Counted from the first letter of the stretch, positions 774-64,000 are shown. The stretch: DNA of 64,000 bases from Eutreptiella sp. 'Long Island Sound 2002' (GCA_964036045.1 OZ038378.1:59892001-59956000), one strand, 5' to 3'. Notes: generated by a model not told the origin, from the sequence alone. Numbers and translations are program-made.

Positions 774-1686
774 TCATGGTGCGGTCTCTGCAGCCACCAA
801 TTCTGCTTCTTGTGGTATGCTCTTAGTACTAGGGCTACACTTGCTTGCACGAGATCGTGCGTTGGCTAGCATGGGGGCATAATCAGTAACCGGCTCAGGT
901 GCTGCATGCCAATCGCCAAGAACGAATTTCTGTTTCACTAGATCAACTAAAACGGGCATACCTAACAAACATACATCTTTCAAAGACCAGTGGTGCTTGA
1001 AAACTAACTTTTGGTGTGAAATTGTATGCCCTCCATGAGCGACAACAAGATACACAGAACGAACAACAAACACCCCACACTTTGTGCAACGCTTGCATGA
1101 CATTATGCAATTATCACGGCGACGCATCCATGCCGGGTCTTTCCGACTCCTTTGATCAACCAATTCAGTGCTAATGGAACTCACCGTTCGAAACACACCT
1201 GCAACGCTGCTTTAGGGGGTGGTCTGTGCGTCACCCGTGAATTAGCAAAAGAGGGATCGCACATATCATGGAGATGTATGCCTTGGATGAGGGGTTGAAG
1301 GCGTTACAAAAGACGCGGGCGGTGAAGGATGAAAGTAACAAGCGGCAAAGAAAGGAGTAACAGCAACGTACAAGTGAACCATTGTGTTCTGGATTGTTTG
1401 TTGTGCCCATTGTTTTGTGCCACCCAAAATCAGGACCCCCACCAGGAAGTGCAATCAGCAAGAGGTTCCTGGTCAGTATGTATGATCTACATCCCAATTC
1501 AGTAACCCCTTTCTGGTCTGCATGTACTCTCAAGAAGTATCCCATACCTCCCGGGAACCAAAGTGGCAAACGCTTCGAAATGGGCCATTTGGGGTGAAGC
1601 GCATGTTTGTCCAACAAAGATGATCCCCTCAACAGGATAACCCTTAGTTTTTGGTTCCTGCCCCCGCCCTTGGTCCGTGTGCTCAA
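774..1686 (-). pseudogene. Decayed coding remnant with a Cys/His cluster (CIMSCKRCTKCG..HGGH..H), possibly transposon-derived
   Basis: ORFs 774-1196 and 1231-1686 on the minus strand read as fragments of protein-like sequence. No family recognised. Confidence 0.3.
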
Positions 1687-1729
1687 ACGGAAGTTGGGCC
1701 CGGGAAGGGGAGTGGGGGGTGTTCCCGCT

Positions 1730-4460
1730 ACCCCCTCCCCGGGGACACCACATGGGTGGTTTGTCGGCGCCTAGTGATCTTTGCGGATGCAAGAGGGCGC
1801 CAATAGGAGGGCAAAAGGTTTCAAGGTCGGGGCGTCCTCGGGCAAGGACGGGTGTCAAGGGCAAATTGGGGGTTTCGGCGGCGTACCCTGCCAATTTGCA
1901 AGCGTTTCTAGGGTGAAATTGGGGTGTTTAGCCTGCAACTTGTATCCTAGGTTTCTGCTTATTGCTCGGCCTCTCCCCAGTTTGTGGAGTTTCTCGTGCT
2001 CTTTGTGGTGGATACCAGGCGCCGATAGGAGTGCAATAGGTCTCAAGGTGGAGGCCGGCGGGGGCATGGAGCGGTGTCCAAGGCAAGTTGGGGGGTTTCG
2101 GGCTGTACCCGGCGAATTTTGGGGGCGCTTTTAGGGTGTTTTGGGGGGGTTTTGATTTTGCGGTTTGTATCCCCGGTTTCACCTTACGGCTCTAGTCTGC
2201 TAGGTGGTTTTTGGGGTGATTTGTGCTCTTTGTGGAGGGAAGGGGGCGCCGATATAAGTGCAACAGGTCTCAAGGTTGAGGCTGGCGGGGGCACGGAGGG
2301 GTGTCAAGGGCAAGTTCGGAGGTTCCGGGCTGTACTCGGCCAATTTGTCGCCGCTTTTAGGGGTTTTTTGGGGGGGTATTGATCTTGCGGTTGCTATCCC
2401 AGTTTTCCCTTTGCTGCTGTGGGCTGCTAGGTGGTTTGTGGGGGGTCCACTCCTCTTTGTGGAGGCAAGGGGGCTCCTATAGGCGGGCAAAAGATATCTA
2501 GCTCGGGGCTACCTCGGGCAAGGACGCGTGTCACGGGCCAAGTGGGGAGTTCTTGGGTGTACTCGGCCAATTTGGGGGCGTTTCTAGGGTAATTTGGGTG
2601 TTTATTTTGCGGTTACTATCCTACGTTTCTCATAACTACTCTAGACTGCTCGGTGGTTTGTGCAGTGTGTAGTGCTCTTTGTGGACATGCCGGGGAGCTA
2701 ATAGGTGGGCAAGAGGTCTTAAGGTTGAGGCTCTACCGGGGGCACGTAGGGTGTCAAGGGCAATTTTGGGAGTTCCGGGACGTACTCGTCAAATTTGGGA
2801 ACGTTTTCAGCGTGTTTTGGGGGCATTTCTCTTGCGGCTTGTATCCCACAGCCCTCCTTTATGCTCGGGGCTGCTAGGTGGGTTTTGGGGTGTCTAGTGC
2901 TCTTTGTGGAGGCAGCGGGGCGGCGATATGAGGGCAAAAGGGTCTCGAGGCAGGGTCAACAGCGGCACGGAGGGTGTCAAGGGCAAGTTGCCGAGTTGGG
3001 GCCGTACATGGCAAACTGGGGGGCATTTTTAGGGTGTTTTCTTTGGGCATTTTAGGGCGGTTTGCAGCCCAAGTTTTTGCTCATTTTTCTGGGTTGTTGG
3101 GCGGGTTGTGGGGTGTCGAGTGCTTTTTGTGGAGGCAAGGGGCCACCGATAGGAGGGCAAAAGGTCTGAAGGTCGTGGCCATGGGGGCCACAGGTGTCAA
3201 GGGCAAATTTGGGGGTTCCGGGCCAGACTTGGCCATTTGGGGGGCACTTTTAGGGTTTTTTTTGGGGTCTCAATCTTGCAGTTTGTATTTCACGTTTCTC
3301 CGTCTTGCTATGAGCTGCTGGGCGGGTCGTGCAGTGTCTAGTGGTGTTTGTGGAGGGAAGGGGGCGCCGATAGGAGGGCAAAGGGTCTCAATGCCGGGAC
3401 TGCCGCTGGCACGGAGTGTTGTCAAGGGCAAGTTGGGGGGGCCTGGGGTGTACTTGGCCAGTTTGCGGGTGTTCCCGGGGTGAATTTGGGGTATCTATCT
3501 TGCGGTTTGTATCCGAGGGTTCTCCTTATTGCTCCGGGCTGCTGGGTGCTTTGTGGTGTGTCTAGTGCTCTTTGTGGAGGCAGCCAGGCACCGATAGGAG
3601 ACCAACAGGTCTCAAAGTCGGTGGTACCGGGGGCACCGAGGGGTGTCCAAGGCAAGTCGGGGCGTTTCGGGCCGTACTCATATATCTTGCAGCTTGTAAG
3701 CCAGGTTTCTCTTGCATTGCTCTTGGGTGCTCGGTCGTTTTTGGGGTATCTAGTGCTCTTTGAGGAGGCAAGGGGGCCAATAGGAGGTCAAAAGGTCTAA
3801 AGGTTGGAGCTTCCTGGTGCATGGAGGGATGTGAAGGGCAAACCATAGGGTTTTGGGGCGTAGTGGGCCAATTGGGGGCATTATTTGGGTGTTTTTGGGG
3901 GGCTATTTGTGTTGCTGTTTGTATCTCGGCTTGATAAGTTCCTTGAAAAAAATACACCCGAAATATGCCCCCAAATTGGCCGAGGACGCCCGGGAACCCC
4001 ACAACTTCCCCTTGACACCCCTACGTGCCCACGGTACCGCCAACCTTGAGACTTTTTGCCCTCCTATCGGCGCCCCCTTGCCTTCACAAAGAGCACTAGA
4101 CACCCCACAACACGCCCAACAGCCCAGAGCAGAATGGACAAATGTGGGACAAAGTGCAGGATAAATACCCAAAAAAAAACACGCTAAAAGTGCCCCCAAG
4201 TTGGCCGAGTGCAACCTGGAATCCCTCAACTTGCCCTTGACATCCCTCCGTGCCCCCGGCAGCCCTGACTTTCAGACCTTTTGCCCTCCTATCAGCGCCC
4301 GTTTCCCTCCACAAAGAGCACTACTCACCCCACAAACTGCCCAAGAGCCGGGAGCCGTAAGGAGAAACGTTGGTTACAAACCGCAAGTTCAATGCCCCAA
4401 AAAGCACCCAAAAAGTGCTCCCAAATTGGCTGGATACGGCTAGAAACACGTAAATTTGCC
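1730..4460. repeat. Tandem satellite with ~223-bp unit; orientation flips near 3935
   Basis: The motif GTGCTCTTTGTGG recurs at about 1996, 2223, 2672, 2897, 3119 and 3565. Its reverse complement CACAAAGAGCAC appears at about 4086 and 4309. Confidence 0.9.
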
Positions 4461-25645: not shown

Positions 25646-26216
25646 CACGGGGGGGACGTCTCCTCGGTCTTGGTACGCGACCCCCCCCCCCCCCCCTCCG
25701 GGCCCTCTCGGCCCACTTAGTTACCAAGGGTCAATGGCTACTGACCATACATATGGTGGCGCCAAAGGCGCCCGAAAATTTTTTTTCATTCCCCTTGCCC
25801 ACGTAGCATCCCTCCCCGCCCAGGCGGTGGAGCACCCCAACGCTATACTTGAACCCAACCTTGACTCTAACGCCCACCCCAACCCGCAGCCTGCTCCTAA
25901 CCCTACAGCTGACCCTACCCATGACCCTAACCCTAACCCCAACCCTAACCCTAACCCTAACCCTAGCCCTAACCCTAGCCCTAGCTCTCACCCCAGAGGG
26001 AGGGCAGGGGGACGTAACGGGAGCATGTGCCCCCCCCCCACCACCCCAAATGGCCCCACCTGGACCCCCCCCCAACTGACCCTCCCGACCGCCCCCCCCC
26101 CCATCGCCCCTCCCTGAACCCCCCCCTCCAAGCCCCCCCCCCCCTCTTGGGGGCCTTTGGCCCACTTCTACTGGGGGGGGAGTCGCGTACAGAAGCGAGG
26201 AGACGTCCCCCCCGTG
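25646..26216. mobile_element. Non-autonomous TIR element (MITE, 571 bp) with 8-bp TSD CACCTACC and internal (CCCTAA)n
   Basis: TIR CACGGGGGGGACGTCTCCTCG is perfect for 21 bp and imperfect to ~40 bp. TSD at 25638-25645 and 26217-26224. The empty site is visible in the neighbouring satellite unit at ~27480. Confidence 0.9.
25925..25984. repeat. Interstitial telomere-like (CCCTAA/CCCTAG)n tract
   Basis: Direct reading; a related tract lies at ~45340-45410. Confidence 0.85.
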
Positions 26217-39129: not shown

Positions 39130-41440
39130 TAGGAGTAGCCGTCTAGGGGGTCCCAAACCCTTGAAAGTAGGGGACAAAATGAGCAGTAGCCCACAAGCAG
39201 GCCTGGTAGCTGCACAATGCGTGCCCTTTGGGGTGTCCCCAACACTTCACACCGGGTAACAAAATTAGAAGTGGCCCACAAGCAGGCCTGTTGCCTGCGT
39301 AATCCCTGCCATTTGGAGGTTCCCTAACGCTTCAGAACCGTGACAAAATCAGCTGAGGCCCACAGCTGGCTCTGGTGGCTCTCTAACCCCTACCGTCTAG
39401 AGGTTCCTAAAAGCTACAGAACGGGGGGGAACATCAAAAGCTTCCCACAAGTGGGCCTAATGGTTACGGGACCCCTGCCATCTCGGGCGTCCCCGGCGCT
39501 TTGCAGCGGGGGAGAAAATTAGGCGTAGCCGTCAGGTGGGCGTGGTGGCTACGTAGCCCATAGCATGTGTGCCGTCCCTAACTCTGCGAAGCGAGGGAGA
39601 AAATCAGCAGTGGCCCACAAGTGGGCTTGGTTGCAACATAACCCATGCCGCCCGAGGGTACCCAACGTTTCAGAGTTGGGACAAAATCATCAGTGGCCCA
39701 CACATGGCCCTAGTGGCTACGTAACACCTATCGTCTGCGGGTCCCAAACGCTTCAAAGCAGGGGACAAAATCACAAGTGGTCCGCAAGGGGGCCTCCTGG
39801 CAAAATAACGCCTACCATCCGTGTTGTCACCAACGCGTGGGAGCAGGCGACAAGATCAATAGTGGCCTTGAAAGGGGCGTGGTGGCAAGGTAAACCATGC
39901 CGTCTACAATGTCCCACACACTTCAAAGTAGGAACAATCCAGGGAAAGGCCCAAAAATGGGCCTGGTGGCTATTCGGCCCCTGCTATTTGGGGTGCCCCC
40001 AACACTTCAAAGTAGGCGACGAAATGAGCCATGGCCCACAAGGGGGCGTGGGGGCTAAAAAACCCCTGCCATCTAGGGGGTCCCAAGAGCTTCAGGGCAG
40101 GGACAAAATTACCAGCGGCCCACAAGCGGGCCTTACACACCACTTATACACCCCATCAGCCCCGAGTACCGAAAGCTGGGGGACAAAATGATCAGAGGCC
40201 GACAAGTGGGCCTGGAGGCTACAGAACCCCCGCCATCTGCCGGATCCGCGACTCTTCCAAGGTGAGAAAAAATCAGGAGTAGCCCACACATGGCCCTGGT
40301 GGCTACATAACCCACACCGTCTCGGGGGTCTAAAACGGTTCAAAGCGGGGACAAATTCAGAAGTGGCCCACAAGTGGGTCTCGTGGCTACATAACCCCCA
40401 CCATTCGAAGTAGATGACAAAATCAATACTGGCACACAAGGGGGCGTGGTGGCTACGTCCTCCCTACCATCTAGGGGGCCTCCAACGCTTTAGACTGGGG
40501 AACAAAATCTGCAACAGCCCACAAGTGGTCCTAATGGTTGCATAACCCGTGCCAGCTTGGGGGGTCCCCGACGCTTCAAAATGGGGGGCAAAACCGAGAA
40601 AAGCCTAACAGTGGGCGGGCCGGCTATGTAACCCCTTCCGTTTGAGGGGTCCCTAACGCTTCAAAGCAGGCCACCATATCACTAGTGGGCCACAAGGGGG
40701 CGTGATGGCTATATAACCCCTGCCATCCAGGGGGGACCCAAGGCTTCACGGTTGAGTTGCGCCGGGTTGGGTAGTAGGTGGGAGCGGACAACGCCCTATC
40801 TGTTAGGGGGGTGTTGGAGCGGTGCGGAGCAATGAGTGTGTGCGTGCAGGAGAGTTGCGGACCCCAAGGCCTGTTGTGGGTGGTGATAGCTCGTTGGTAT
40901 TGAAGTGCCAAATCTAGGTGTCCATGAGTTCATCAGGGATATGGGCTCCATGGGTAAGGGCAACCATCAATTGTCGCACATATACAGCAGGGGTTATGTA
41001 GCCATCAAGCCCACTTGTGGGGGACTACTAATTTTGTCCCCCACTCTAAAGCGTTGGCGCCCCCGTAGACGGTAGGGGTTGCGTAGGCACCAAGCACACT
41101 TGTGGGCTACGTCTAATTTGATCCCCTGATTTAGAGCGTTGGGGAGCCCCAAGCAGCATGGGGTTAAGTCGCCACTAGACCTACTTGTGGGCCACTGCTG
41201 ATTTTGTGCCCGCTCTCAAGCGCTAGAGACCCCCTAAATGGTAGGGGTTGCGTAGCCACCATGTCCACTTGTGGGTCACTTCTAGTTTGATCCCCCTTTC
41301 TGAAGCTTTGGGGACCCCTAGGACGGTAGGGGTTACATCGCCACCACGCCCACTTGTGGGCCACGGCTGATGTTGCCACCCGCTCCGTGGCATTGGCGAC
41401 ACCCTAAACGGTAGCGGTCACGTAGCCGGGAGGCCCACTT
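39130..41440. mobile_element. Foldback-like element: inverted arms of ~84-bp tandem units around a ~240-bp unique core
   Basis: Units (GTGGCCCACAAGTGGGCCTGGTGGCTACATAACC..GGGACAAAAT) are forward at 39130-40745 and reverse at 40985-41440. The core 40745-40870 is homologous, inverted, to 61150-61300. Confidence 0.65.
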
Positions 41441-45000: not shown

Positions 45001-45104
45001 GTAGCCAAGCTCCCCACTTGTGGGCCACTGCTGATTTTGTCTCCCGCTCTGAAGCGTTGGGGACCCAGGAGTTGCGTAGCCACCAAGCCCACTTGTGGGC
45101 CACT

Positions 45105-46926: not shown

Positions 46927-47568
46927 TTAGGCTTAGGCCACGCAAACTGCCCACCCCCGTGGCACACTTTTGCCCGGTTCTACACCCAAAAAGAGCAGTG
47001 TAAAAAACTCCCCTTTTTTGAACGTGTATTTTCGCGGCCGATGAAGTTAGGGGTTCAAAACACCCTTTCTACACTACTACTTCATGATGATTGAAAATGC
47101 TGATCTCAAAAGTATGTTTCCCATGATTGCAGCTGGGGCCAGCAACTTCCTTGACGAAAAGTACTTGTGGGATGTCCCCCAATTACATTTGTTGGTGATA
47201 TTCAATCGTGCACATGTTGGTTACTATAGTCACCGCGTATTGGACATGTCTTGTTACTTTGTATCTTTGGTATCAAGTTTATCATTGAAGCAGCTGGGGC
47301 CAGCACCTTTGCAAGCAATTTCACCTTTCCTTGGTTCTTTTTGGCAGAAAGGTGCGGGTGCCAGCACCTGCTGACTCAAATGGTCTTCTCGAATCCCCCT
47401 TTGGCTCAAAGTAGCTGCTGCCAGCACCTTTCAATGCAATCGAGTCTCTGAGATGATGTCCCGGACTATGAGTGCTGGCACCAGCACCAACTCCATTGAG
47501 CAACCTGGTTAGTACCATTCCCATATCCATTCCACCGATGTTTATCTTCATAAGGTACGTGCATCTCA

Positions 47569-49845
47569 TTGAAGGATAGGGAGTGTGCTGTGTTTTGCCA
47601 CCATGTGCATCGTGTCTTTTACTTGCATCACCAGACTTTTGTAATGAAAATTTCCTACTCCGTTGTTCGGCATCTACTACGTACTGGACATTATTCAAAT
47701 GGGTCTTCTTTATTACGTGATGCCCATGCTGGCGAGCCGGGGGTTCTGATGTTAGTGCACCTATTGGCTCAGGTCCGCTGCAACCGTCGTACTCGTAAGA
47801 CTGTACCTCAAATTGTTGTTGCAAGTAAGCAAAATAGGAAGCCTCGTTGGTTGTCCGTTTTCACGAAACATTTATATATGCTATGGTCTGTCCTGCACAA
47901 GGCTGCACGTCCAACTAGTAAGGTATCACGGAAAGACACACTTACAGGTCAACCTTTGACGCAGGGTGTTCGCCGTGTTTTAGCAAACCGTGGTGTTGTT
48001 ACCAATCGCCCTGTACCACTAACTGCCAAGGCTACCTCGGCTGCACAACAACTGTGGTCGTCCATGTCAAACCACCAAATGGCTATGTGGTTTGATAACT
48101 GGTGGTGGAAGAGGTCTACTACTTACCCAGAGCATCCCAATCCCACCATGAACCTGACAGTGTTTGCAATGTTGCACACTACAGACCTATGTCCCTTCCC
48201 TGGGCATCCGTCTTTGGTAACCGTGTTGGGACAGCTGGACTCAGCTGTGCATTCCACTGCTACTGCACTTCGCTCCTTGAACGATGTTACATGGGTTTCG
48301 CTTGATGCGGAGCCTGAGTTTATTCGTGTTCCCCTCGATATTAAACGGGACAACGTTAGGTCACTACAATTCCGGCCACTGTTGTTGACCGATTTGACTA
48401 CCGGTGGGATCCTTGATTTGCTACACATTCTACAAGAGATCCAGGACATACAGCGGCACACCCGGCACCCCATGCCCCTAATAATTGATATGAAAATACA
48501 TTTTTATTTACTGCGTTTTTTGTACGGGGAGTCATATGTGCAGTACAATTTCCATGAGCATCTGTCCCTGTTGCCTTGTATGTACGGTGCGTGGCACCCT
48601 TACAAACACACTGCCCTTGAGGTATACAAGGCCTTCTTTCCTATCTTTGCTGCCTTGGAAAACTGTAATTTGCAAGTTGGTGCCATGGTGTACCACCACT
48701 GTAAGCTGCTCCACATTGAGAAAGTGGTAGCAGCACTACTACTTGTAGGTAACTCTGTTCGTGTACGTATTCAACGCAAATCGGAATGGTTGCAACTGGC
48801 ACGAGCATCTCTCTCATCAGTTCAAGTGGATACAGCTACCCGTTGGTTGCAAGGACGGCAGTCCTTGCTGTTTAGTTATGTCCCTGCGCTTTTTGCGTTA
48901 GGCGTACAGGTACGCAACTGCAACTGGTCAGGGCGACAGCCAGGCACTGGTCAGGCAGCCCACATAGTTTTGCAATGGAGCCTGTTGCTACATCTGTTTC
49001 TTACTGGCGATTGGGACGCCAAAACAGAATACGTTCGCAGTTTGAGTGTCACACTTGCAGTGTGGCAGGAGTGGATGAGTAATACCCTAGGTTGTTTCTT
49101 TGCCGAAAAAATTGGTGAGGCCCTGTTGTCCCGGCTCTCCGCCCGGGTCAAGCTCCATCCAACTGCATTATCGCAACCCGCTCTAATGGACTTGTTCCTC
49201 AGCATGCCACACCCGCGCATGGGCACCAAAACCCTTCGCGGCAAGCTACGCACTGGTCTGTGCGATCTTTTTCGAGCACGCCTCCGTCGCTTTATCGCCT
49301 GGTGTACCAGTCCCCAGCTTTTGTTTGCCCCATTTACTACAGCTAAAACCACTGCTTTTGTTGGCCTTCTACCTGAAGGCCACACGTTTCCCAAGCCCAT
49401 CCCTGATTCTGTTAATGAGGCTGCTCTGCGAAAGGTTTTTCGCAGGAGTGTGCTCTTATTATTATCCAACCGGTCCCCTCCGGAAGGTGTAACTGAGTAC
49501 TTGGATCAATGCAATTTTAGGAGAGACCCTGCAGAGGTTGCACAGCTCACTAGCCTAATGGAACGGTTCCGCACACGGAACAGGCGCGGGAAAGGGGGGG
49601 GGGAGGGCAAGGGTAAGGGTGCCCCTGATGCCGATGATGCTGATGCACCAGATCGGTTTGTGGGGGTAGAGGATGACCACATATCCGTGTCCAGTGCTGA
49701 TTCCCTTGGCTCCCTGAGGCATCTGGTAGATGATGTGGATACCATGAGTGATGCCCCCCCCCGCCCCTTTGTTTTGTTTCAAGAGGAAGACGAATTCAAT
49801 TTGCCTCCCAGTGACGAGGAGGAGGGGGCAGTGTTCCAAGAATAA
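47569..49845 (+). CDS. DDE (RNase H-fold) transposase, Academ/DUF6589-like; first ATG at 47644
   Basis: 758-codon uninterrupted ORF between the TIRs. Motifs by eye: WFDN (D176), IIDMK (D307), YGAWH (H343), VQVRNCNW, EYVRSL, FFAEKIGE (E513/E517) and an acidic tail. Their order matches the Academ pattern DN..D..GxxH..RxxxW..YxR..E. Confidence 0.8.
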   Translation: MKDRECAVFCHHVHRVFYLHHQTFVMKISYSVVRHLLRTGHYSNGSSLLRDAHAGEPGVLMLVHLLAQVRCNRRTRKTVPQIVVASKQNRKPRWLSVFTKHLYMLWSVLHKAARPTSKVSRKDTLTGQPLTQGVRRVLANRGVVTNRPVPLTAKATSAAQQLWSSMSNHQMAMWFDNWWWKRSTTYPEHPNPTMNLTVFAMLHTTDLCPFPGHPSLVTVLGQLDSAVHSTATALRSLNDVTWVSLDAEPEFIRVPLDIKRDNVRSLQFRPLLLTDLTTGGILDLLHILQEIQDIQRHTRHPMPLIIDMKIHFYLLRFLYGESYVQYNFHEHLSLLPCMYGAWHPYKHTALEVYKAFFPIFAALENCNLQVGAMVYHHCKLLHIEKVVAALLLVGNSVRVRIQRKSEWLQLARASLSSVQVDTATRWLQGRQSLLFSYVPALFALGVQVRNCNWSGRQPGTGQAAHIVLQWSLLLHLFLTGDWDAKTEYVRSLSVTLAVWQEWMSNTLGCFFAEKIGEALLSRLSARVKLHPTALSQPALMDLFLSMPHPRMGTKTLRGKLRTGLCDLFRARLRRFIAWCTSPQLLFAPFTTAKTTAFVGLLPEGHTFPKPIPDSVNEAALRKVFRRSVLLLLSNRSPPEGVTEYLDQCNFRRDPAEVAQLTSLMERFRTRNRRGKGGGEGKGKGAPDADDADAPDRFVGVEDDHISVSSADSLGSLRHLVDDVDTMSDAPPRPFVLFQEEDEFNLPPSDEEEGAVFQE

Positions 49846-50310
49846 TTCCCCGCCCCCCTGCCTAACTATAGGGTAGGGTTACGCTTGTCTGCATGAGTAG
49901 CTGGTGCCAGCAATTCCCCCCTATTGTTCCTGCTTTCCTCGCTGCACATTGCACACACACCGTTGTCTGTTGTCTGTCGCACTGTTTTGTGTTCGGTCTG
50001 TTTGGTCTGGATGCAATGGAATCAAAGTCTGTCACGTGTACTGACCAGTCACGGAAACATGATCATTTGAGACGGCCGTCTCCTTCCAGGGCTTTGGAAC
50101 AAGTGCGCAATTTACCAGTGCCATGTCAGTAGTAGCGAAGCGGATGCCGCTGTCGGGGATTAATTGACTGCGATGTGCGCTGCCCTTCGTATGCACAGAG
50201 CCACTGACACACCGCTCAATTTGCGCCATTTTCTGCTGAAACTGCTGTTCCATTACCGATTTCTGTCGATTTGCCGCACCATTTCCCTTCAAATGAGACT
50301 CTTCATCATA

Positions 50311-53164
50311 ATGTCAGATGCAACCCCTGCTGAGGGTGCTGGTGCAATGTCACCTCTACCAATGACACCGTCAACGAACGGGGGATTCCTAAGCCAGTCT
50401 CAGGATGTGACGGCATCACAGCCAGTTCCAGCGCCAGGTGGTAAAGGAGGCAAGAAAGACAGTGCACTGAAGATCAAGCTCGCGGACCACTGTGAAAAAA
50501 AGGAGGTGGAAATACCCTTGGAGAAACTGCGATGGGACGAGAAGATGCAGTTTGGGAAGATACGAAAGTGGTCTGAGGATGAGGTACTGAACAAGGTCAA
50601 GGACCTGAAGGAGCGCCCGCCGACTACCCTTTTCCGGATTGTAATATGGGGTGATGGAAGTATGCTGCCTTCTGTGCGCACAGTTTGCTGTTTCGTTACC
50701 AATAACTTTCGTCGGTGCTGGTGCCAGCATCGCTTGTCCAAAATCGCCGTTGACTTTGATCATTTGTGACCGGGTGCAATATCAGTTCGGATCTACTGGA
50801 TACTGTCTGGCCAGCACATAGTGGAGGCTGCTCGGCGCGTGAAACTGGAGCTAGAGAAGCGAAACTTGCCCCCTCCCCGATGGTGTTTCCATTTCTTGGC
50901 GACTGTTGTGCGGCCTGAGACCCCGTTGACCATTCGTGAGTCCCTGGCAGGAATCAGTCAAGCCAACTAGACAGCACGAGCACCAACTTTGTGTGAGAGA
51001 GTTCAGCGACTGGTGGTGGAATACGAAAGGGATACCGAGGGGAACTTGACTGCCAGAGAGCACCTGACGAATTTGTGGGTGAAAGGTGGATTCAGCGCTC
51101 AAGATGGCACACTGGTGTGTAACTGCCCGTCAGCACGTCCGTTTGTTTGTGGTTTCATCGCCCTGTCAACGTACTCCGCCATCTGTTGCCCGGTGTGAAT
51201 CCTGTGGTACCCCTTGTAGGCCAATATGATAAAGCAGTGGTCTCCTGTGGCTCTGTTGGTGAGTACTTGTGGACGTGAAGCAGCGTTTGCAGTGCAGATG
51301 CTGGAGGCCCGCGGTCATAGCATGACTGTGAATCAAATGCGTTGCTTCGAAGGACAGGTGCCCCCCGATATCCGGACAATCTGCAAGTTTATGGCTGACA
51401 CGGCCAATAGTGGAGCACAGCTCAAGAAGATGGGAAAGCGATTGAAACTGGATCGGTTATGGAGTTGGCATCTGTGTCATCCTGAGAACAATCTCATCCA
51501 TGAATCTCGCCGTATGTTTGCCCTCCCATAAGGATGCATCTGCGGTGGCTGTTCGATTGCAATTTGTTGTGAGAGGTGCTGGGGCCAGCACCCATCGTTC
51601 GGAAATGCCGTTTTGGTGCCTGCAAACACTGGGGTCTCAAAGTTTGTACTATGATTGCTAAGGTGGACTGGGTGAACGAGAAAAGTGTGAATCCCTCCTG
51701 GCAAGCCGAAGTGACTTGTATTTCAAGACATACACGTGGCGTTGGACAGAAGAGGACCCTTTTCCACCGTGGAAATACGTTGTCAGTGCGCCGATTTGGA
51801 AGGATGTCAGCTATGTTGGTCTGCGAGAATCTTTGTCGAAACCACTGGTGTTACCAGCCGTCCAGGCGAATCAGGTCAATTTCTTCACCGTCGACCTGCA
51901 CATGGGTGCCACTGAGGAGAATTCACAGGTCTGTGTGCTACCCCGGTTGCAAGGCGATTCACTGACGTCACTGCTTGGCCTTCACTCGGAACTTCACTTG
52001 GAACATGAATGTGTTGCAGTTGGAAGGGGACTCGGACGGAAAACTACTGGTGCTGCCAGCTGCAATTGGCTGGGCCATCCCAGCAGCAGTGGCTGGTATC
52101 TCTTTTACAATGGTGTACATTGAGCCCCCCCATGGTTTTACCCTGGGCATCCATGCATTGGTCAGTACAGTGCTGCAGCGTGGCGTTCTTGTTGTTGTTG
52201 CCGGTGAGCCTGGTGATTGTCGTGGCATTCTGGACAGTCTTCGTGAACAGCACCAAGATACGGGGTTCTGTGCTATTAAGCTGTCAGTGTACCACCTCAA
52301 CAAGAAGTCACCACAATTTACTATGGGGTGTACTGAAGTGAATCTTCTCTCGAAACATCCGCTGCCACAAAAGGTATCTAGACCACACTGCGACCCTGGT
52401 TGTTCGGACACACGCTCAAAAATCACAACAAAATGGTCGTTTCACCTCGTTGCAGTTGGGGCCAGCTCCTTTCATTGAAGAATTGCTTTTTTCCCCCCTT
52501 TAAGGTGCCTCGATACATTACTGTGACGGATTTCCCAAGTGGGGGGTACCTGCCCGTGGAGATTGTTGGTTACTTGCTGACACTGGCTGGTGAAATGGTG
52601 GTGTACCAAGAAATATGGCTGCTGCTATTGTCCTCCTCCCACGCATTGCCCGGGGCCCTCACAGTTCGATTTCATATTCCTGTCAATGTGGTGGTTGGTA
52701 TCCTTGGGGATACGGCAATTCAGGACTTTGTCACACATGCTGTTGCTCGATGCAAGGAAGCTGATGGCCTGCCGAATATTGACTGGACTGGGGTGACAAA
52801 TCAGATGCTCCATGGGGTACCCATTGATTGCAGGGGAAAATTCCGCAAGCTTGAGGACGTAGAACAGGGGGATGAGGATGAGGATGGAGAGGAAGTGGCC
52901 GAGCATGAAGCAGAGCCGTTGGCCCAAAAGCCGAAGCCCAAAAAAACCGGTGCCAAGCGGAAGCAGGATGAGGAGAGCAGTAGTTCGAAACGTGCAACTC
53001 CAATGAAGGCTACGAGCAATGGGGCACAGCAGTCTGCGACTGGCGGGGAGAAGTCCAACAGTGAAGGCGCCGCTGGTGATCCTGCTGACACTGTGAAGCC
53101 CAAACGACTTGGATTTACCAATTGGACTGCCCGGATCAACAGGGCTGCTGCAGCAAAGAAGTAA
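50311..53164 (+). CDS. Six-exon cargo gene: ParB/Srx-like domain plus degenerate beta-class amino-DNA-methyltransferase-like region; one in-frame TAG (50968-50970)
   Basis: Predicted exons 50311-50659, 50786-51114, 51220-51511, 51663-51928, 52020-52373 and 52505-53164. All five introns are GT-AG (126, 105, 151, 91, 131 bp), phases are consistent, and the total is 2250 nt. ParB-like: EIPLEKL..GKIRKWSEDEV..IYWILSGQHIVEAAR. MTase-like: FTMVYIEPPHG (cf. DPPY) and later YLPVEIVGYLLTLAGEMVV (cf. motif X-I region). Confidence 0.7.
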
Positions 53165-54249
53165 TCATGTTTCTTGATCCCATAAAGACTGGTCCAGTGC
53201 TTTGCACTACAGCGCTGTCAGTGTTCGTCTTGCACAGTCATGCACTTGTCCGTTGGTTTTGTTGTTACACAGCACTCACAATACCTGTTCTTGGTTTGCA
53301 CCTACTATTTCTTTGTTTTCCTCAGGAGGTGCTGGCACCAGCTACTCTTTGCCCAATTGCTTGTCTTCATTGCCATTTTTCCAGGTGTTGGTGCTGGCCC
53401 CAGCTGCTCAGCTGGATTTTCATGTAAACAGCCCTGTCTTTCAGGTACAACAATTTACAGGTGAATTTTGCATATACTTCGCAGCGGTGACTCCTATGTA
53501 TGGTTGTGTATGTGCATATGATACTACTAGTGTATTACAAAGCATACGATTCGAAGTTCCCAATGTGGAAATAGAGACACTGTGTCAGCGTGCTTGTTCG
53601 TGTCCACAGTTGAGGGGGGGTCCAGAACAGCGTGATTTTACAGCTTCCTGTTTACATGGTGCAATAAGCCCTACATGTGCTTTTCCTCCGATATCACACC
53701 TTCAATCCAGGAAATGGGAACTGGGTTCAATAGATGAAAATGAAAGAAACGTGTTTGAGACCCCCCAAAAAGGCCCTGTTTTTGTGCCTACAATAAGACA
53801 CCATCAAAATGAGCCCACAGACCCCCCCATCTGGTGCTGGCACCAGCACCAGACGAAGATGCTGGTTTGCCACCTATGCTTCCGTGAAGGTGGGCAGTTT
53901 GCGTGGCCTAAGTTAGGTAGCTTCTCCCCCGCCCCGGCTAGCGTACAACGGCCGGAGACGGGGCGTACTGGCTGCCCGGTGTCCTCCTTCCCGCCCCGGC
54001 TCGCGCAGCACGTCCACAGCCGGGGTGTGCATGTCCCGCGTCCGCGCAACCCGCGGCCCTAGCTCCAGCAACCCGGTTGCGGCCGGGGGGTGCTGGCTGT
54101 GAGCGCCTTCCCTTCTGCCCAACCGGCGCGGAACGGCGACCGCCAGGGCGGAGGTGTCCCTCATCATCCCCCCGCCCGCCCCGGCCGCCGCAGCCCAGTA
54201 GCGGCCCAGGCGCTAGCTTCCCGGACCGCTCCCACACCCATGGCAGGGA

Positions 54250-58020: not shown

Positions 58021-61000
58021 CGTTGGGTACCCCCAAGCCGGTGGGGAGTTTTTTTAGCCATACGGCCCACTTGCGGGCCGCTGGTGATTTTGTCCCCCAC
58101 CGTAAAGCGGTTGGGAAATGGCAGACGGAAGGCGTTACGTAGCCACCATGCCCCCTTGTGGGCCATGGGTGTATTTGTCACCTGCTTTGAAGTGTTTGGG
58201 TTGGCACTATGGTGGCGGTTATTTAGCCATCAGGCCCCCTTGTGGGCCACCTCTGAATTTGTCCCCCGCTTTGAAGCGTTCGCGACCCCCTAGAGGGTAC
58301 GGGTTACGTAGGCACCGGGGCTACCTATGGGCTAGTGCCGATTTTGTCCCACCTGTGAAGCGTTTGACACCCCCCATACGGCGGGGATTATGTAGCCACC
58401 GCGCCCACTTGTGCGCTACTTCTACTTTCGTGGCCCGCTGTGCAGCGTTGTGGACGCCACAAATTATGGGGCTTATGTAGCCACGTGTCGCACTTGCCGA
58501 CCACGGCTGATTTTTTTCCGTAGTTAAAAGTGTTTGAGACCTCCTCGATAGCTGGGGTGGCATAGCCACCGTGGCCAGCCGTGAGCCTGAGTTGATTTTG
58601 TTCCACCTCTGAAATGTTGGAAACTCCCCAAATCGCTCGGGTTACGTAGCCACCATGCTTGCTTTTGGGCCAATTTTGATCTTGTCCCCCGCTATAAAGC
58701 ATTGGGACGCAATAGATGGTATAGGTTATGTAGCCACCATGCCCACGTGTGATCAACCGCTGAATGTGCCCCCCGCTATGAAGCGTTGGGGACCCCCCAG
58801 GCGGTAGAGGTTGTGTAGTCAACAGGGCCAAGTTTGCGCCACTGCTCAATTTTTGTCAGCTCCGAAGCAGTGGCTATATAGCCGCTGGGCACACTTGTCG
58901 ACCACTTCTTCTTTTGTCCCCCGCTTTGAAGCATTGGGGACTCCCTAGACCACACGGTTTTTGTAGCCACTAGGCCACTTGTGGGCCACTTCCAATTTTC
59001 TTCCCCGTTTTGGAGCGTTGGGGACCCTATAGATGGCAAGGGTTATGTAGCCACTAGGCCCACTTGTGGGCCATTGCTATTCTTGTCCCACAATTTGACA
59101 CGTTCGGGAGCCCCAGGACGGCATGGGATTACGTAGACACCACGCGATTTTGTGGGCCATTGGTAAGTCTGTCGCTAGCTTTGAACCGTCGGGGACCCCC
59201 GAGATACCGAATGTTGCGTAGCCACCAGGCCCAGTTGTAGGCCACTTCTGATTTTGTCCCCCTCTGTGAGGCGTTGGAGACACCCTAGGCGGCATGGGTT
59301 ACTTCGCCACCACGCGCACTCGTGGCCCGCTGCTGCTTTCGTCCCCCGCCTTGATGCATTGGGGGCTGCCTAGACGGCTGGGGTTATGTAGGCACCATGC
59401 CCCCTTGTGGGCCACTAGTGGTTTGGTTGTTTGCTTTGAAGTGTTGCGGACTTTGCAAACGGGAAGAGTTCAATAGCACCCCACCCGCTTGTGGGCTTTT
59501 CCCGGTTTTGTCGGCCTCTTTCCAGCGCCACGGACTCCCAAGATGGCAAGGGTTATGTAGCCATTAGGCCCATTTGTGGGCCACTGCTGATTTTGTGCCC
59601 CGCTCTGAAAGCTTGGGGAGCTCCTAAATGGCCAGGGTTGCGTAGCCACTAGGCCCACTTGTGCGCAACTTGTGATGCGATCCCCCTTTGAGACGGTTTG
59701 GGGAGCCCCTAGACGGCAAGAGTTACGTCGGCACCACGCCCACTCATGGGCCACTACTGATTTAGGGACCCTACTCAAAAGCATTGGGGACACTATAGAC
59801 GGTAGGAAATATGTAGCTATGTAGAATATGTATTTCTCCCCCGCTCTAAAGCGTTCGGAGCGCCCTAGACGGTGGGGTTTTTGTAGCAACAAGGGCCAGC
59901 AGTGGGCCACATCTAATTTTGGGCCAGCTATCAAGCGTTGGGGAGCCGCATGATGGGTCAAGGCAGGGGACACAATAAGAAGTGCCCCCCAAGTAGGCTT
60001 GGTGGCTACACAACCCCTGCGATCTGGGGGGCCCCCAACGCTTCACAGCTAGAACAACACCAGCAGTAGCGCACAGGTAGCCCTAACGGCTACGTAACCG
60101 TTGCCCTAGGGGGTTCCCAATGCTTCGGAGCGGGGGACAAACTCAAAGGTGGCCCACAAGTGGGCCTGGTGGCTACATAAACCCTATCATTTGTGGGGTT
60201 CTGAATGCTTCGTAGAGGGGGAGAAAAACAGCGATGGCGCACAAGTGGGCGCGGCGGCAATGTAACCACTGCCATCTTAGGGGTTTCCAACACTTCACAG
60301 TGGGCGCTAAAGTCGAAAGTGTCCATCAAACGGGCAAAGTGGCGACGTAGCCCCATGCCGTTTAGGGGGGTGCCCAACGCTTTAGGGCGGAGGACAAAAT
60401 GAAAAGTGGCCAACATTGGGCCTCTATGCTACACAAGCCATGCCATCTAGGGGTCCCCGACGTTTCACAGAGGGGGACAAAATTAGCACTCGCCCACAAA
60501 TGACCACGGTGGCTACGTAACTCCCACTATCTAGGAGGTCCCAAAAACTTCAAGGGGGGGGGGGATTTAGAAGTGGCCAACAAGTGGGCCTAGTGGCTAC
60601 ATAACCCCTACCATCTATGCTGTCCCCAGGCCCACAAGTCGGTTTGGTGGCTGTGTAATGCCATGTGGTCCAGGGTTCCCCAACGCTCCAAATCAGGGTA
60701 CAACATTATAAGTGGCCCACTATTGTGCCACCTACATATGCAACCCCTGCCGTGCACAGGGGCCCCAACGCTTCACAGTGGGGGGACAGACTGAGCAGTG
60801 GCCCACAGGTGGGCATGATGCCTACATGACTCCCGCCCTCTTCCGGGTCCGCTATTGCCAAGCCCCCGCTGCCGCTTTGTAAGCCACAAATGGGGATACG
60901 TGCCCTGGAACCCTTTACCGAACTTGAAAACCGGTTTATCTTGGACGTCTTGCAGCACATCCAGGACGACCACCCGGTGTATGCCCACCGGTAGCAGGTG

Positions 61001-61920
61001 CAACAGTTCCCCGCAAACAAACCTGGGTGCCCATGTCGCACGGGCTCACACCCATCTATGTGCGACAACTGATGGCTGCCCTTACCCACGGAAGCCATAT
61101 CCCAGATGACATCATGCACACCTATATCCGGCCCTTCAACACCAGCTAGGTGACCACGGACCACAATAGGGGTTGGGTTCCGCAACTCTCGTGTACGCAC
61201 ACCCTCATCACTTCGGCTCCGCCCTAACAACCCCCCAAAAGACATGGCATCGTTCGCTCACCCCCAACGCCCAACCCGGCACAACTCAACCTTGAAGCCT
61301 TGGGGACCCCATAGATGGCAGGGGTTACGTGGCCACCGCGCCCCCTTGTGGGCCGATAGTGATTTGGTCGCCTTCTTTGAAGCGTTAAGAACCTCCCAAC
61401 CGGTAGGTGTTAAATACCCACCGTGCCCGCTTGTGGGCCTTTCCCGGCCGTGTCCCATTTTTTGAAGTGTCGGGGACCCCTTAGACTACAAGGGTCATGC
61501 TCCCGCTACACCAACCTGTGCGCAACTTCTGAATTTGTCACCTGCTTCGAAGTCTTTGGGACCCCCAGACGCTAGGTGGACTTTTTCTCACGCATGAAGC
61601 GTTGGCGGGGGCTATGTAGCGACTAGGCCCACTTGCCGGCCACTGCAGATGTTGTCCTCCACTAGGGTAACCCCTAGGTGGCGGGGAGGTTTTTTAGCCA
61701 CAAGGCCATTTGTGGGGTGCTGGTATTTATGTCCCTCGCTGTGAAGTGTTTGGGACCCAAATGGCAGAGTTTTCGTCGCCACCACTCCCCCTTGTTGGTC
61801 ACTGCTGATTTTGTCCCCTGCTTCGAATCTCTTGGGACGGCACAGACGGTAGGGGTCATGTAGCCACCTATGAATTTATCTCCCACTTTGAAGAGTTTAG
61901 AACCCCCCAGACGCTAGCTG
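58020..61920. repeat. ~84-bp satellite family (same as 39130-41440), with orientation switches and a unique core
   Basis: Reverse at 58020-59990, forward at 59990-60800, unique at 60800-61280, reverse at 61280-61920. Confidence 0.85.
60870..61150 (+). pseudogene. Coding remnant in the Foldback-like core; weak resemblance to the Ulp1/C48 protease N-terminal part
   Basis: MGIRALEPFTELENRFILDVLQHIQDDHPVYAHR* then, after a frameshift, ..LMAALTHGSHIPDDIMHTYIRPFN (cf. L..g.WLnD.vin.Y). Confidence 0.3.
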
Positions 61921-62879: not shown

Positions 62880-64000
62880 CTTGTGTTTTGTTGTGTTGTG
62901 GTGTGTGGCAGTGTGTTGTTGTGTTGTGTTACTAGTGTCGGCCATTGTTATGTGATGTGGGCTGCGGGCGGTGGGCCTTGGGCTGTGGGCTGGGGCCTGT
63001 CGGCTGTGCCATGTGATCTGTGATTGGTGGTGTGTGGTATATGGTCTGTGGTATGTGTTCTTTGGTCTATGGTTGGTGGTCTGTGGCCTGTGGTCTGTGG
63101 TCTCTGGTTTTTGGTCAATGGTTGGTGGTGTGTGGCCACTCGTCTGTCGTTTGTGGTCTCTGGTTGGTGGTCTGTGGTTGGTGGTACACAGGTTTCTTGG
63201 TTGTTCCGGTGAAGTTCACATAACTTGTTCCGGCGATGTTTTGGCAACGTTCTCACGTTTTTTTGTGTTCCAAAATGGAATGTCGCCACAACAACTCATG
63301 AGAACGCCGCGGGAGGCCGCCAAACAGTTTTTCTCGCCCTAGTGGCCCTTATTACGAGCGGGAAAGTGGTCTGCGGTCTGTTGTTGGTGGTATGTGGTTT
63401 CCGTGGTTTGTGGTTGGGGGTTTATTGTCAGTGGTCAGTGGTCAGTGGTCAGTGTTAAGTGGTCAGTGGTGTATGGTTGGTGGTCTGTGGTGTGTGGCCG
63501 GTGGTTTGTGGTCTATGGCCATGGGGCTGTGGTCTGTGGTTGGTGGTCTGTGGTCCGTGGTCTGTGGTCCGTGGTTTGTGGTCTGTGGCTAGTGGTTGGT
63601 GGTCTCTGTGGTTTGTGGTTGGTGGTCACTGGTTTGTGGTTGGTGGTCTGTGATATATGGTCAGTGGTCCGTGGTTGATGGTCTGTTGTTGGTGGTTTGT
63701 GGTTTGTGGTTGGTGGTCAGTGGTCAGTGGTCAATGGTATGTGGTCTTCGATCTCTGATGGTGGTCTGTGGTTTGTGGCAGGTTGTCTATGGATGGTGGT
63801 CATTGGTAAGTGGTCAATGGCCTATGGTTTGTGGTCTCTAGCTCGTGGTTTGTGGTCCGTGGTTGGTGGTCTGTTGTTCGTGGTCTGTGATCATTGGTCG
63901 GTGGTGGGTGCTTGGTGGTTGGTGGTCTTGGGTTGGTAGTCTGTGGTTGTTGGTCTGTGGTTTGTGGTCCGGGGATGGTGGTCTGTGGTTGGTGGCATGT
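62880..64000. repeat. Low-complexity degenerate (TGTGGTC/TGTGGTT)n tract
   Basis: Direct reading; the overlapping W/V/C/G-rich ORFs are artefacts of the repeat. Confidence 0.9.

Follow-up and report, generated by a model that had tools for sequence, protein, structure and literature searches.

In a 64,000-nucleotide stretch of the genome of Eutreptiella sp. 'Long Island Sound 2002' (GCA_964036045.1 OZ038378.1:59892001-59956000), which we call the window and in which positions are counted from the first letter, we identified a DNA transposon of 6,981 bp (46932-53912) that carries two genes and a set of family-specific palindromes. It is a real and recently active cut-and-paste DNA transposon of autonomous appearance, and we think it fairly likely that its two genes encode a DDE transposase and an accessory protein, probably of the ParB/Srx type, that binds the element's own palindrome. 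An earlier note, made from the sequence of the window alone, had described this locus as an Academ-like transposon carrying a spliced gene for a fusion between a ParB/Srx-like domain and a methyltransferase.

The two ends of the element are perfect terminal inverted repeats (TIRs) of 24 nt, the left one on the + strand (46932-46955) and the right one on the - strand (53889-53912), which are 100% complementary to each other, give the element CT..AG termini and are the only two matches to the TIR sequence in the whole window. They are directly flanked by identical target-site duplications (TSDs) reading TTAGG (46927-46931 and 53913-53917). The insertion lies in a GC-rich 62-bp satellite, the flanks having a GC content of ~68-70% versus ~50% for the element, and joining the flanks with a single TTAGG gives a sequence that, across the junction, matches a neighbouring unit of this satellite. 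At least three further full-length copies (L001, L003 and L004), 96-98% identical, were found in the long-read ENA assembly ERZ25074135: their similarity to the window is confined to the element, beginning and ending precisely with the TIRs between unrelated flanks, and all four full copies have a TSD of 5 bp (TTAGG in the window, AGCAC in L001, TCATT in L003 and CACTT in L004). The perfect TIRs and the TSD that the earlier note had pointed out are thus confirmed. Since the protein clusters of element copies contain 71-130 member sequences and since the collapsed contigs of the element reach depths of 50-1000 in three organism-labelled DNA runs, the family must be both high-copy and young.

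Its first gene is an open reading frame (ORF1; 47569-49845, + strand) with the 758 open codons that had been reported before; alignment to homologues places the likely start at the ATG at 47644, giving a protein of 733 aa (residue numbers used here count from 47869). Among the full copies compared, ORF1 is intact in the window copy only. Word-indexed protein searches returned near-identical copies and one distant transposase and nothing else, and a profile search gave no addition; an exhaustive HMMER search returned 834 ORF1 homologues at E<=1e-3. Scanning metagenome contigs with a transposase profile yielded two short loci, both too short to hold the second gene. Across an alignment of 26 homologues, D76, D207 and the cluster E413/E414/E417 were found to be invariant or nearly so, together with the further conserved motifs W-x-D-N, P-L-L-V-D-x-N-I-H, G-x-W-H-x-Y-K and C-x-W-x-G-R-x-x-G-T. 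An AlphaFold2 (AF2) model of ORF1 with a predicted local distance difference test score (pLDDT) of 83 and a predicted template-modelling score (pTM) of 0.82 puts D76 on strand 71-80 (strand 1), D207 right behind strand 204-206 (strand 4) and E414 at the opening of a helix; the ~170 residues inserted to separate the second D from the E are all-helical. The best solved folds for this model are those of Hermes, the P element and Transib/RAG1. By its conserved residues and predicted structure, ORF1 is an RNase-H-fold DDE transposase with its acidic triad placed as in such enzymes.

Two observations on the surroundings of other copies may be added here. Locus L005 (844-8863) holds a rearranged copy of the element, with positions 1-1521 on the + strand and the remainder on the - strand; its two halves meet inside ORF1 (around window position 48451), reflecting either an internal inversion or two truncated copies lying head to head. 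A retroelement neighbours the L001 copy: an open reading frame matching reverse transcriptase (RVT_1; L001 4975-5934) is located 1.4 kb upstream of it.

The predicted folds nearest to ORF1 are those of DUF6589 proteins, with template-modelling (TM) scores of 0.60/0.56 over 505 residues compared with 0.40 for hAT, in line with the DUF6589 RNase H fold that the earlier note had expected for this protein. Foldseek neighbours comprised DUF6589 clusters and unnamed proteins of Glomeromycota, Basidiomycota, cnidarians and amphioxus (E 2e-8 to 2e-5), the named DUF6589 entries lying at E 1e-7 to 4e-6, and the language-model score of ORF1 against DUF6589 was 0.95. When the 26 family members were searched against Pfam, they matched neither the DUF6589 model (PF20231) nor another one, even with the threshold relaxed to E<=10. 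On the basis of the structural model, we consider the transposase to belong to an unclassified DDE family outside Pfam with DUF6589 as its nearest relative by fold, a placement in which Academ is compared by its described features only.

DUF6589 may correspond to the Academ transposase; a literature search found no paper linking DUF6589 or PF20231 to Academ. ORF1 shares with Academ/DUF6589 proteins the large size of its DDE transposase and the presence of a helical insertion domain, and the range of DUF6589 proteins (fungi, cnidarians, molluscs and amphioxus) agrees with that reported for Academ. The window element nevertheless differs from Academ in its missing PF20231 match, in its different kind of accessory gene, in that no Pfam match to an XPG nuclease or a helicase was obtained for ORF1 or for any exon of the second gene, and in its 5-bp TSD, AcademX having TSDs of 3-4 bp and AcademH of 9-10 bp (PMC10045372). 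The assignment to an Academ-like lineage made in the earlier note is consequently not retained; the family is possibly a deep relative of Academ, and we do not claim membership. Transib and hAT5, considered for their 5-bp TSD, were rejected: the termini of the element are CT..AG and not CA..TG, a hAT dimerisation domain is missing, and the TM score for hAT is the lower one given above.

The second gene, hereafter the cargo gene, is co-oriented with ORF1 and follows it with six exons on the + strand. Exon 1 (50311-50659) encodes a low-complexity N-terminus and the first part of the putative ParB-like domain; exon 2 (50786-51114) encodes a conserved Y-x-L-S-G-Q-H motif and then helices; exons 3 (51220-51511) and 4 (51663-51928) come next; exon 5 (52020-52373) holds an EPPH motif (EPPR in most copies); and exon 6 (52505-53164) encodes a structured part and an acidic, lysine-rich tail before ending in TAA. 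Together they amount to 2,250 nt in one frame closed by this TAA, and the five introns (126, 105, 151, 91 and 131 nt) all have GT-AG borders. Introns 1 and 2 each have a length divisible by three and might have been read through, but stops occur in them in all copies. The geometry of the six-exon gene proposed in the earlier note therefore stands, but an in-frame TAG in exon 2 (50968-50970, + strand) had been overlooked. This TAG is a private nonsense mutation of the window copy: L001 has CAG at this codon, as do the majority contigs of runs X3, X4 and X6. The cargo gene is nonetheless broken in all four full copies examined: L001, despite its CAG, has nonsense and frameshift mutations of its own, and the L003 and L004 genes are broken as well. 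When the majority substitutions of the high-depth collapsed contigs from the three DNA runs were introduced, the cargo model became a frame of 749 codons with no stop. Because this majority sequence reads through, the founder of the family had an intact cargo gene, which has then been decaying separately in each copy.

The strongest evidence for the reality of this gene and its introns is comparative. In L006, whose transposase is 37% identical to ORF1, a homologue of cargo exons 1-3 lies just downstream (tblastn 1e-11); the exon homologous to exon 1 ends in the same phase (1), so that intron 1 has the position and phase that it has in the window, intron 2 shares its position, the exon homologous to exon 3 begins at the same place, and the intron sequences are unrelated. 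In L013, a decayed copy of a ~60%-identical family, homology extends across cargo residues 163-745, with gaps at the places of the introns. From these sequence comparisons we conclude that the cargo gene and its introns are a real and ancestral part of the element; a probable ParB-like accessory gene has been retained with the transposase across the diverged families of L006 and L013. An alternative would be that the cargo is a captured host gene carried passively, as in Pack-type elements, the palindromes then being unrelated repeats. Such a gene would have introns, as host genes have, and its breakage in all four full copies checked would come as no surprise. This is very improbable all the same, since the same gene with the same intron positions stands beside the 37%-identical transposase of L006 and recurs in the ~60%-identical family of L013, since the majority cargo sequence is intact and since no cargo homologue was found in the window outside the element; we rejected it on the conserved synteny with the transposase in relatives.

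The palindromes have the form GCTGG-NN-CCAGC. When one mismatch was allowed, all 13 matches of the 64-kb window fell inside the element. Twelve of the sites are good dyads, and all twelve lie in the non-coding DNA of the element (36% of it), for which simple arithmetic gives a chance of ~5e-6. The GCTGG and CCAGC arms often extend to GGTGCTGG and CCAGCACC, around a 2-nt spacer. Five sites form a 5' subterminal array (47132-47485; starts 47132, 47293, 47354, 47414 and 47474), the last four being 60-61 bp apart; single sites follow between the two genes (49900-49911), in intron 1 (50717-50728), in intron 3 (51578-51589, with perfect arms of 8 nt) and in intron 5 (52455-52466, where the window copy has one mismatch and the majority of copies are perfect, 52456 T>C); and three sites lie near the 3' end (53331-53847; starts 53331, 53393 and 53836). 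Spacing is regular at two scales: the phase is ~60 bp near both ends, and the interior sites follow one another at 817, 861, 877 and 876 bp, or ~0.86 kb through the right half. An extended motif of ~30 nt from the 5' array recurs in inverted orientation at 53322-53356. The pairing of a co-oriented, intron-bearing second gene with palindromic sites, as pointed out in the earlier note, is thus borne out.

The palindromes of relatives are built alike, their arms of 7-9 nt enclosing a 0- or 2-nt spacer, and each relative has its own sequence: GAGACGGGATCCCGTCTC, seven times in L006; CCGCGAA-NN-TTCGCGG, nine times in L007; and ACTCGGG-NN-CCCGAGT, seven times in L011. Three 18-bp copies of the L006 palindrome (at 1731, 2448 and 3240; 630-790 bp apart) even lie inside the transposase open reading frame (1498-3513), where they share one frame and each encode T-G-S-R-L in a variable loop of the alignment. 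Since the palindromes are family-specific, regularly spaced and kept even at the cost of coding sequence, they are under selection as cis elements. As a separate observation, the transposase frame of L011 is broken by ~270 bp (1714-1985) that contain three of this family's own palindromes, after which it resumes, so that this segment may be an intron hosting sites or a disruption.

The main alternative is that these sites are bound by the N-terminal region of the transposase. The second protein would then do another job, for instance in modifying chromatin or DNA, in nuclear import or in evading host defence. Clusters in fixed phase near both ends and a ~30-nt motif inverted between the ends are indeed the classic subterminal layout of transposase-binding sites, and family-specific sites would co-vary equally well with the transposase as with the cargo. 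We hold this to be rather unlikely, because end recognition would not lead one to expect sites that repeat inside the element at steps of ~0.7-0.9 kb and that fall in introns and even, in the case of L006, within the transposase frame, and because the dyad symmetry of the sites and the published pairing of a ParB-like protein with repeats in Plavaka elements favour the accessory protein as the binder.

Is the second protein then of a kind that could bind such sites? By eye, its N-terminal part resembles ParB/Srx proteins, with I-P-L-x-x-L ahead of a hydrophobic strand and Y-x-L-S-G-Q-H, behind which come helix, strand and a further helix that closes with Q-x-N. L006 shares the S-G-Q-H motif (S-G-Q-H-K there, S-G-Q-H-I in the window copy). 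The language-model neighbours of exon 2 include ParB_N, DUF6551 and DUF3723 clusters at 0.89-0.90 (recognition 2684), and PHROG 723, a 'ParB-like partition protein', matches L006 exon 2 on the expected portion of the profile at E 0.14. We regard it as likely, from sequence likeness, that the N-terminal part of the second protein is ParB-like, so that the ParB half of the fusion described in the earlier note stands as a probable assignment, drawing on two weak but concordant signals, these neighbours and the PHROG match, and not on any curated profile or PDB entry. The S-G-Q-H motif, which we presume to resemble the DGQHR type, probably brings the protein nearer to DGQHR or nuclease-like proteins than to the ParB clamps that bind cytidine triphosphate (CTP). 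We also observed that a DUF3723 cluster of Ascomycota is among the nearest named language-model neighbours of exon 2. DUF3723 is a recurrent accessory gene of the giant Starship transposons of fungi, and this neighbour hints at a wider spread of ParB-like accessory proteins among eukaryotic mobile elements.

The C-terminal half of the protein was approached in the same way. If the cargo was a ParB-methyltransferase fusion, it would load at the palindromes and methylate the DNA of the element at N6A or N4C. ParB-helix-turn-helix proteins fused to Dam-type methylases are found in chlorophytes and chytrids (PMC4738411), and a hydrophobic strand with EPPH behind it and D-F-P-S-G-G further on look, when read by eye, like motifs IV and I in beta-class order. 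Searches for a methylase in exons 4-6 by hidden Markov models (HMMs), against the PDB and by tblastn against phage records gave no match, however, and a language-model search with exon 5 found nothing either, its best score being 0.59. Moreover, the supposed motif IV, (D/N/S)-P-P-(Y/F/W), reads E-P-P-H in the window copy and E-P-P-R in most copies, so that its aromatic position is taken by H or R, and PAG3, a related published protein of ParB type, has a 2-oxoglutarate (2OG) oxygenase instead, indicating that the partner domain varies. We thus find a ParB-methyltransferase fusion quite improbable; the second protein is probably not an active N6A/N4C methylase, and the methyltransferase half of the earlier description is not supported.

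Altogether, we favour a two-gene cut-and-paste transposon with a DDE transposase and an accessory protein that binds the element's palindrome. According to this model, the transposase cuts at the 24-nt TIRs and inserts with a 5-bp stagger, and the accessory protein would bind the palindrome of its family as a dimer. At the phased subterminal arrays, a complex would then form that brings the two ends together and supports the transposase, as TnpA does in En/Spm, and the interior sites would let the accessory protein coat, bridge or mark the entire element. The outcome of binding would be a nucleoprotein specific to the family, by which the transposase is recruited or assisted.

Several results weigh against this model. 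The link between the protein and the palindromes is one of co-occurrence alone, and the N-terminus of the transposase could be the binder. No Pfam, NCBIfam or PADLOC HMM and no PDB sequence matched any cargo exon; phmmer and profile searches of the exons against PDB sequences gave no usable match, nor did tblastn of exons 2 and 5 against 50,697 phage records. The ParB-like domain is divided between two exons by intron 1, which weakens every exon-wise test, and an AF2 model of exon 2 alone (from a 4-row alignment) reached a pLDDT of 45. The arginine patch of canonical CTP-binding ParB proteins (GERRxR) is absent, S-G-Q-H-I/K standing in its place. L006 is the single distant relative with enough downstream DNA for the cargo to be checked. 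Finally, the five introns, for which the earlier note had looked to RNA, showed no spliced joint: no spliced read or contig was seen in four metatranscriptomes and in the three organism-labelled runs, which look like DNA, a fourth organism-labelled run (X2) gave no contig on the element, and the metatranscriptome contigs run unspliced across introns 1, 2, 4 and 5 and the 3' end of intron 3, possibly as a result of DNA carry-over.

If the accessory protein does bind the palindromes, a bacterial-style identity system consisting of a protein plus its cognate site would exist inside a eukaryotic transposon. Such a system would account for the way in which families of one genome, although closely related, do not cross-mobilise the dead copies of one another. 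A bolder proposal, to which we give limited credence, is that the transposase family, with its 834 homologues, no Pfam model and a 5-bp TSD, would be a new superfamily-level lineage of eukaryotic DNA transposons defined by an obligatory recognition module made of the ParB-like protein and the palindrome. Loading at sites every 0.06-0.9 kb, which would be retained even within introns and the transposase frame, the protein would coat or bridge the element from end to end. The palindrome of each family would then have a function similar to that of a plasmid incompatibility determinant, in that it would decide which copies can be mobilised by a given pair of proteins. With its intact transposase and its compact size of 7 kb, the element is a practical candidate for transposition and binding assays.

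In the rest of the window, a second palindrome, GCCCAC-NN-GTGGGC, occurs 28 times when 0.8 occurrences are expected (39443-41361, 45012-45100 and 58065-61438). These arrays have sites mostly ~85 bp apart, with a central dinucleotide that flips (AA or TT) between blocks, as it would at opposite ends of other elements. Neither a transposase nor a cargo homologue was found at them, and they may therefore be non-autonomous relatives with a site of their own. An interstitial run of ~15 CCTAAC units (TTAGGG-type telomere repeat; 25896-25983) sits inside a 6-kb block of GC-rich 49-bp and 97-bp satellites (24.2-30.2 kb), a 227-bp tandem repeat is present in 8.6 copies at 1755-3679, and 63366-63989 is taken up by a long (GTGGTCT)n array in which GC and AT skew are strong. 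No host gene was recognisable in the window, where 10 long open reading frames had no Pfam family, and an Rfam search of it gave no match.

The earlier note had supposed that a transposon with this combination of genes was undescribed, which proved wrong in kind: ParB-type accessory genes in algal transposons were published in 2025, and two papers of that year, by Dinatale et al. and by Petroll et al. (bioRxiv 10.1101/2025.02.11.637652), already carry the idea. In the red alga Bostrychia moritziana, Plavaka elements carry the ParB-like protein PAG3 beside arrays of inverted repeats, and the authors propose that PAG3 acts on the transposon that encodes it, by binding to it and modifying it (Petroll et al. 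2025, bioRxiv 10.1101/2025.02.11.637652). The window element is likewise a eukaryotic DDE transposon with inverted-repeat arrays and an accessory protein whose N-terminal part is probably ParB-like. Plavaka, however, is a CACTA-like clade with CA..TG termini and TSDs of 2-5 bp (PMC12730594), whereas the window element has a DUF6589-like fold and CT..AG termini; the second domain of PAG3 is a 2OG oxygenase, whereas no known domain was recognised in the C-terminal half of our protein by searches with single exons; and, unlike in Plavaka, sites are also found at regular intervals in introns and, in L006, inside the transposase frame. Sola1-1_Ec32 of Ectocarpus encodes an accessory protein of 1104 aa that joins a ParB-like domain to an N4C/N6A methylase (PMC12477816). 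Here again a DNA transposon has an accessory gene for a ParB-like, DNA-binding protein, and the proposal is that this protein binds the element that carries it and marks it epigenetically, but Sola1-1_Ec32 belongs to the Sola1 superfamily, is 21.5 kb long and has its accessory gene on the opposite strand and a recognisable methylase, while the cargo described here is co-oriented, gives no methylase signal and has a degenerate motif. What is new, therefore, is the partner transposase family, which is unclassified and DUF6589-like and has a 5-bp TSD, as well as the regular spacing of sites along the whole element and their placement in introns and, in L006, in in-frame loops of the transposase. 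New, too, is the C-terminal domain, which matched no known family in the searches made with single exons.

Bacterial and plasmid ParB-parS partition modules resemble the window element, as modelled here, in having a dimeric protein with a ParB-type N-terminal domain followed by helices, and replicon-specific palindromes that differ between families. In contrast to them, the element has no ParA partner, reads S-G-Q-H-I/K where they have G-E-R-R-x-R, resides in a eukaryotic host and has a spliced gene, and a role in segregation is not expected. Parallels among eukaryotic elements use other proteins: En/Spm (CACTA) elements, with TnpA and TnpD, and PIF/Harbinger elements, with a Myb-like protein and a transposase, both combine a catalytic protein with a separate, sequence-specific DNA-binding one. 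They share with the model proposed for the window element this two-protein logic and repeated subterminal motifs that help to assemble the ends, and they differ from the element in that their protein folds are unrelated and that their sites are confined to the subterminal regions, where those of the window element extend along its whole length.

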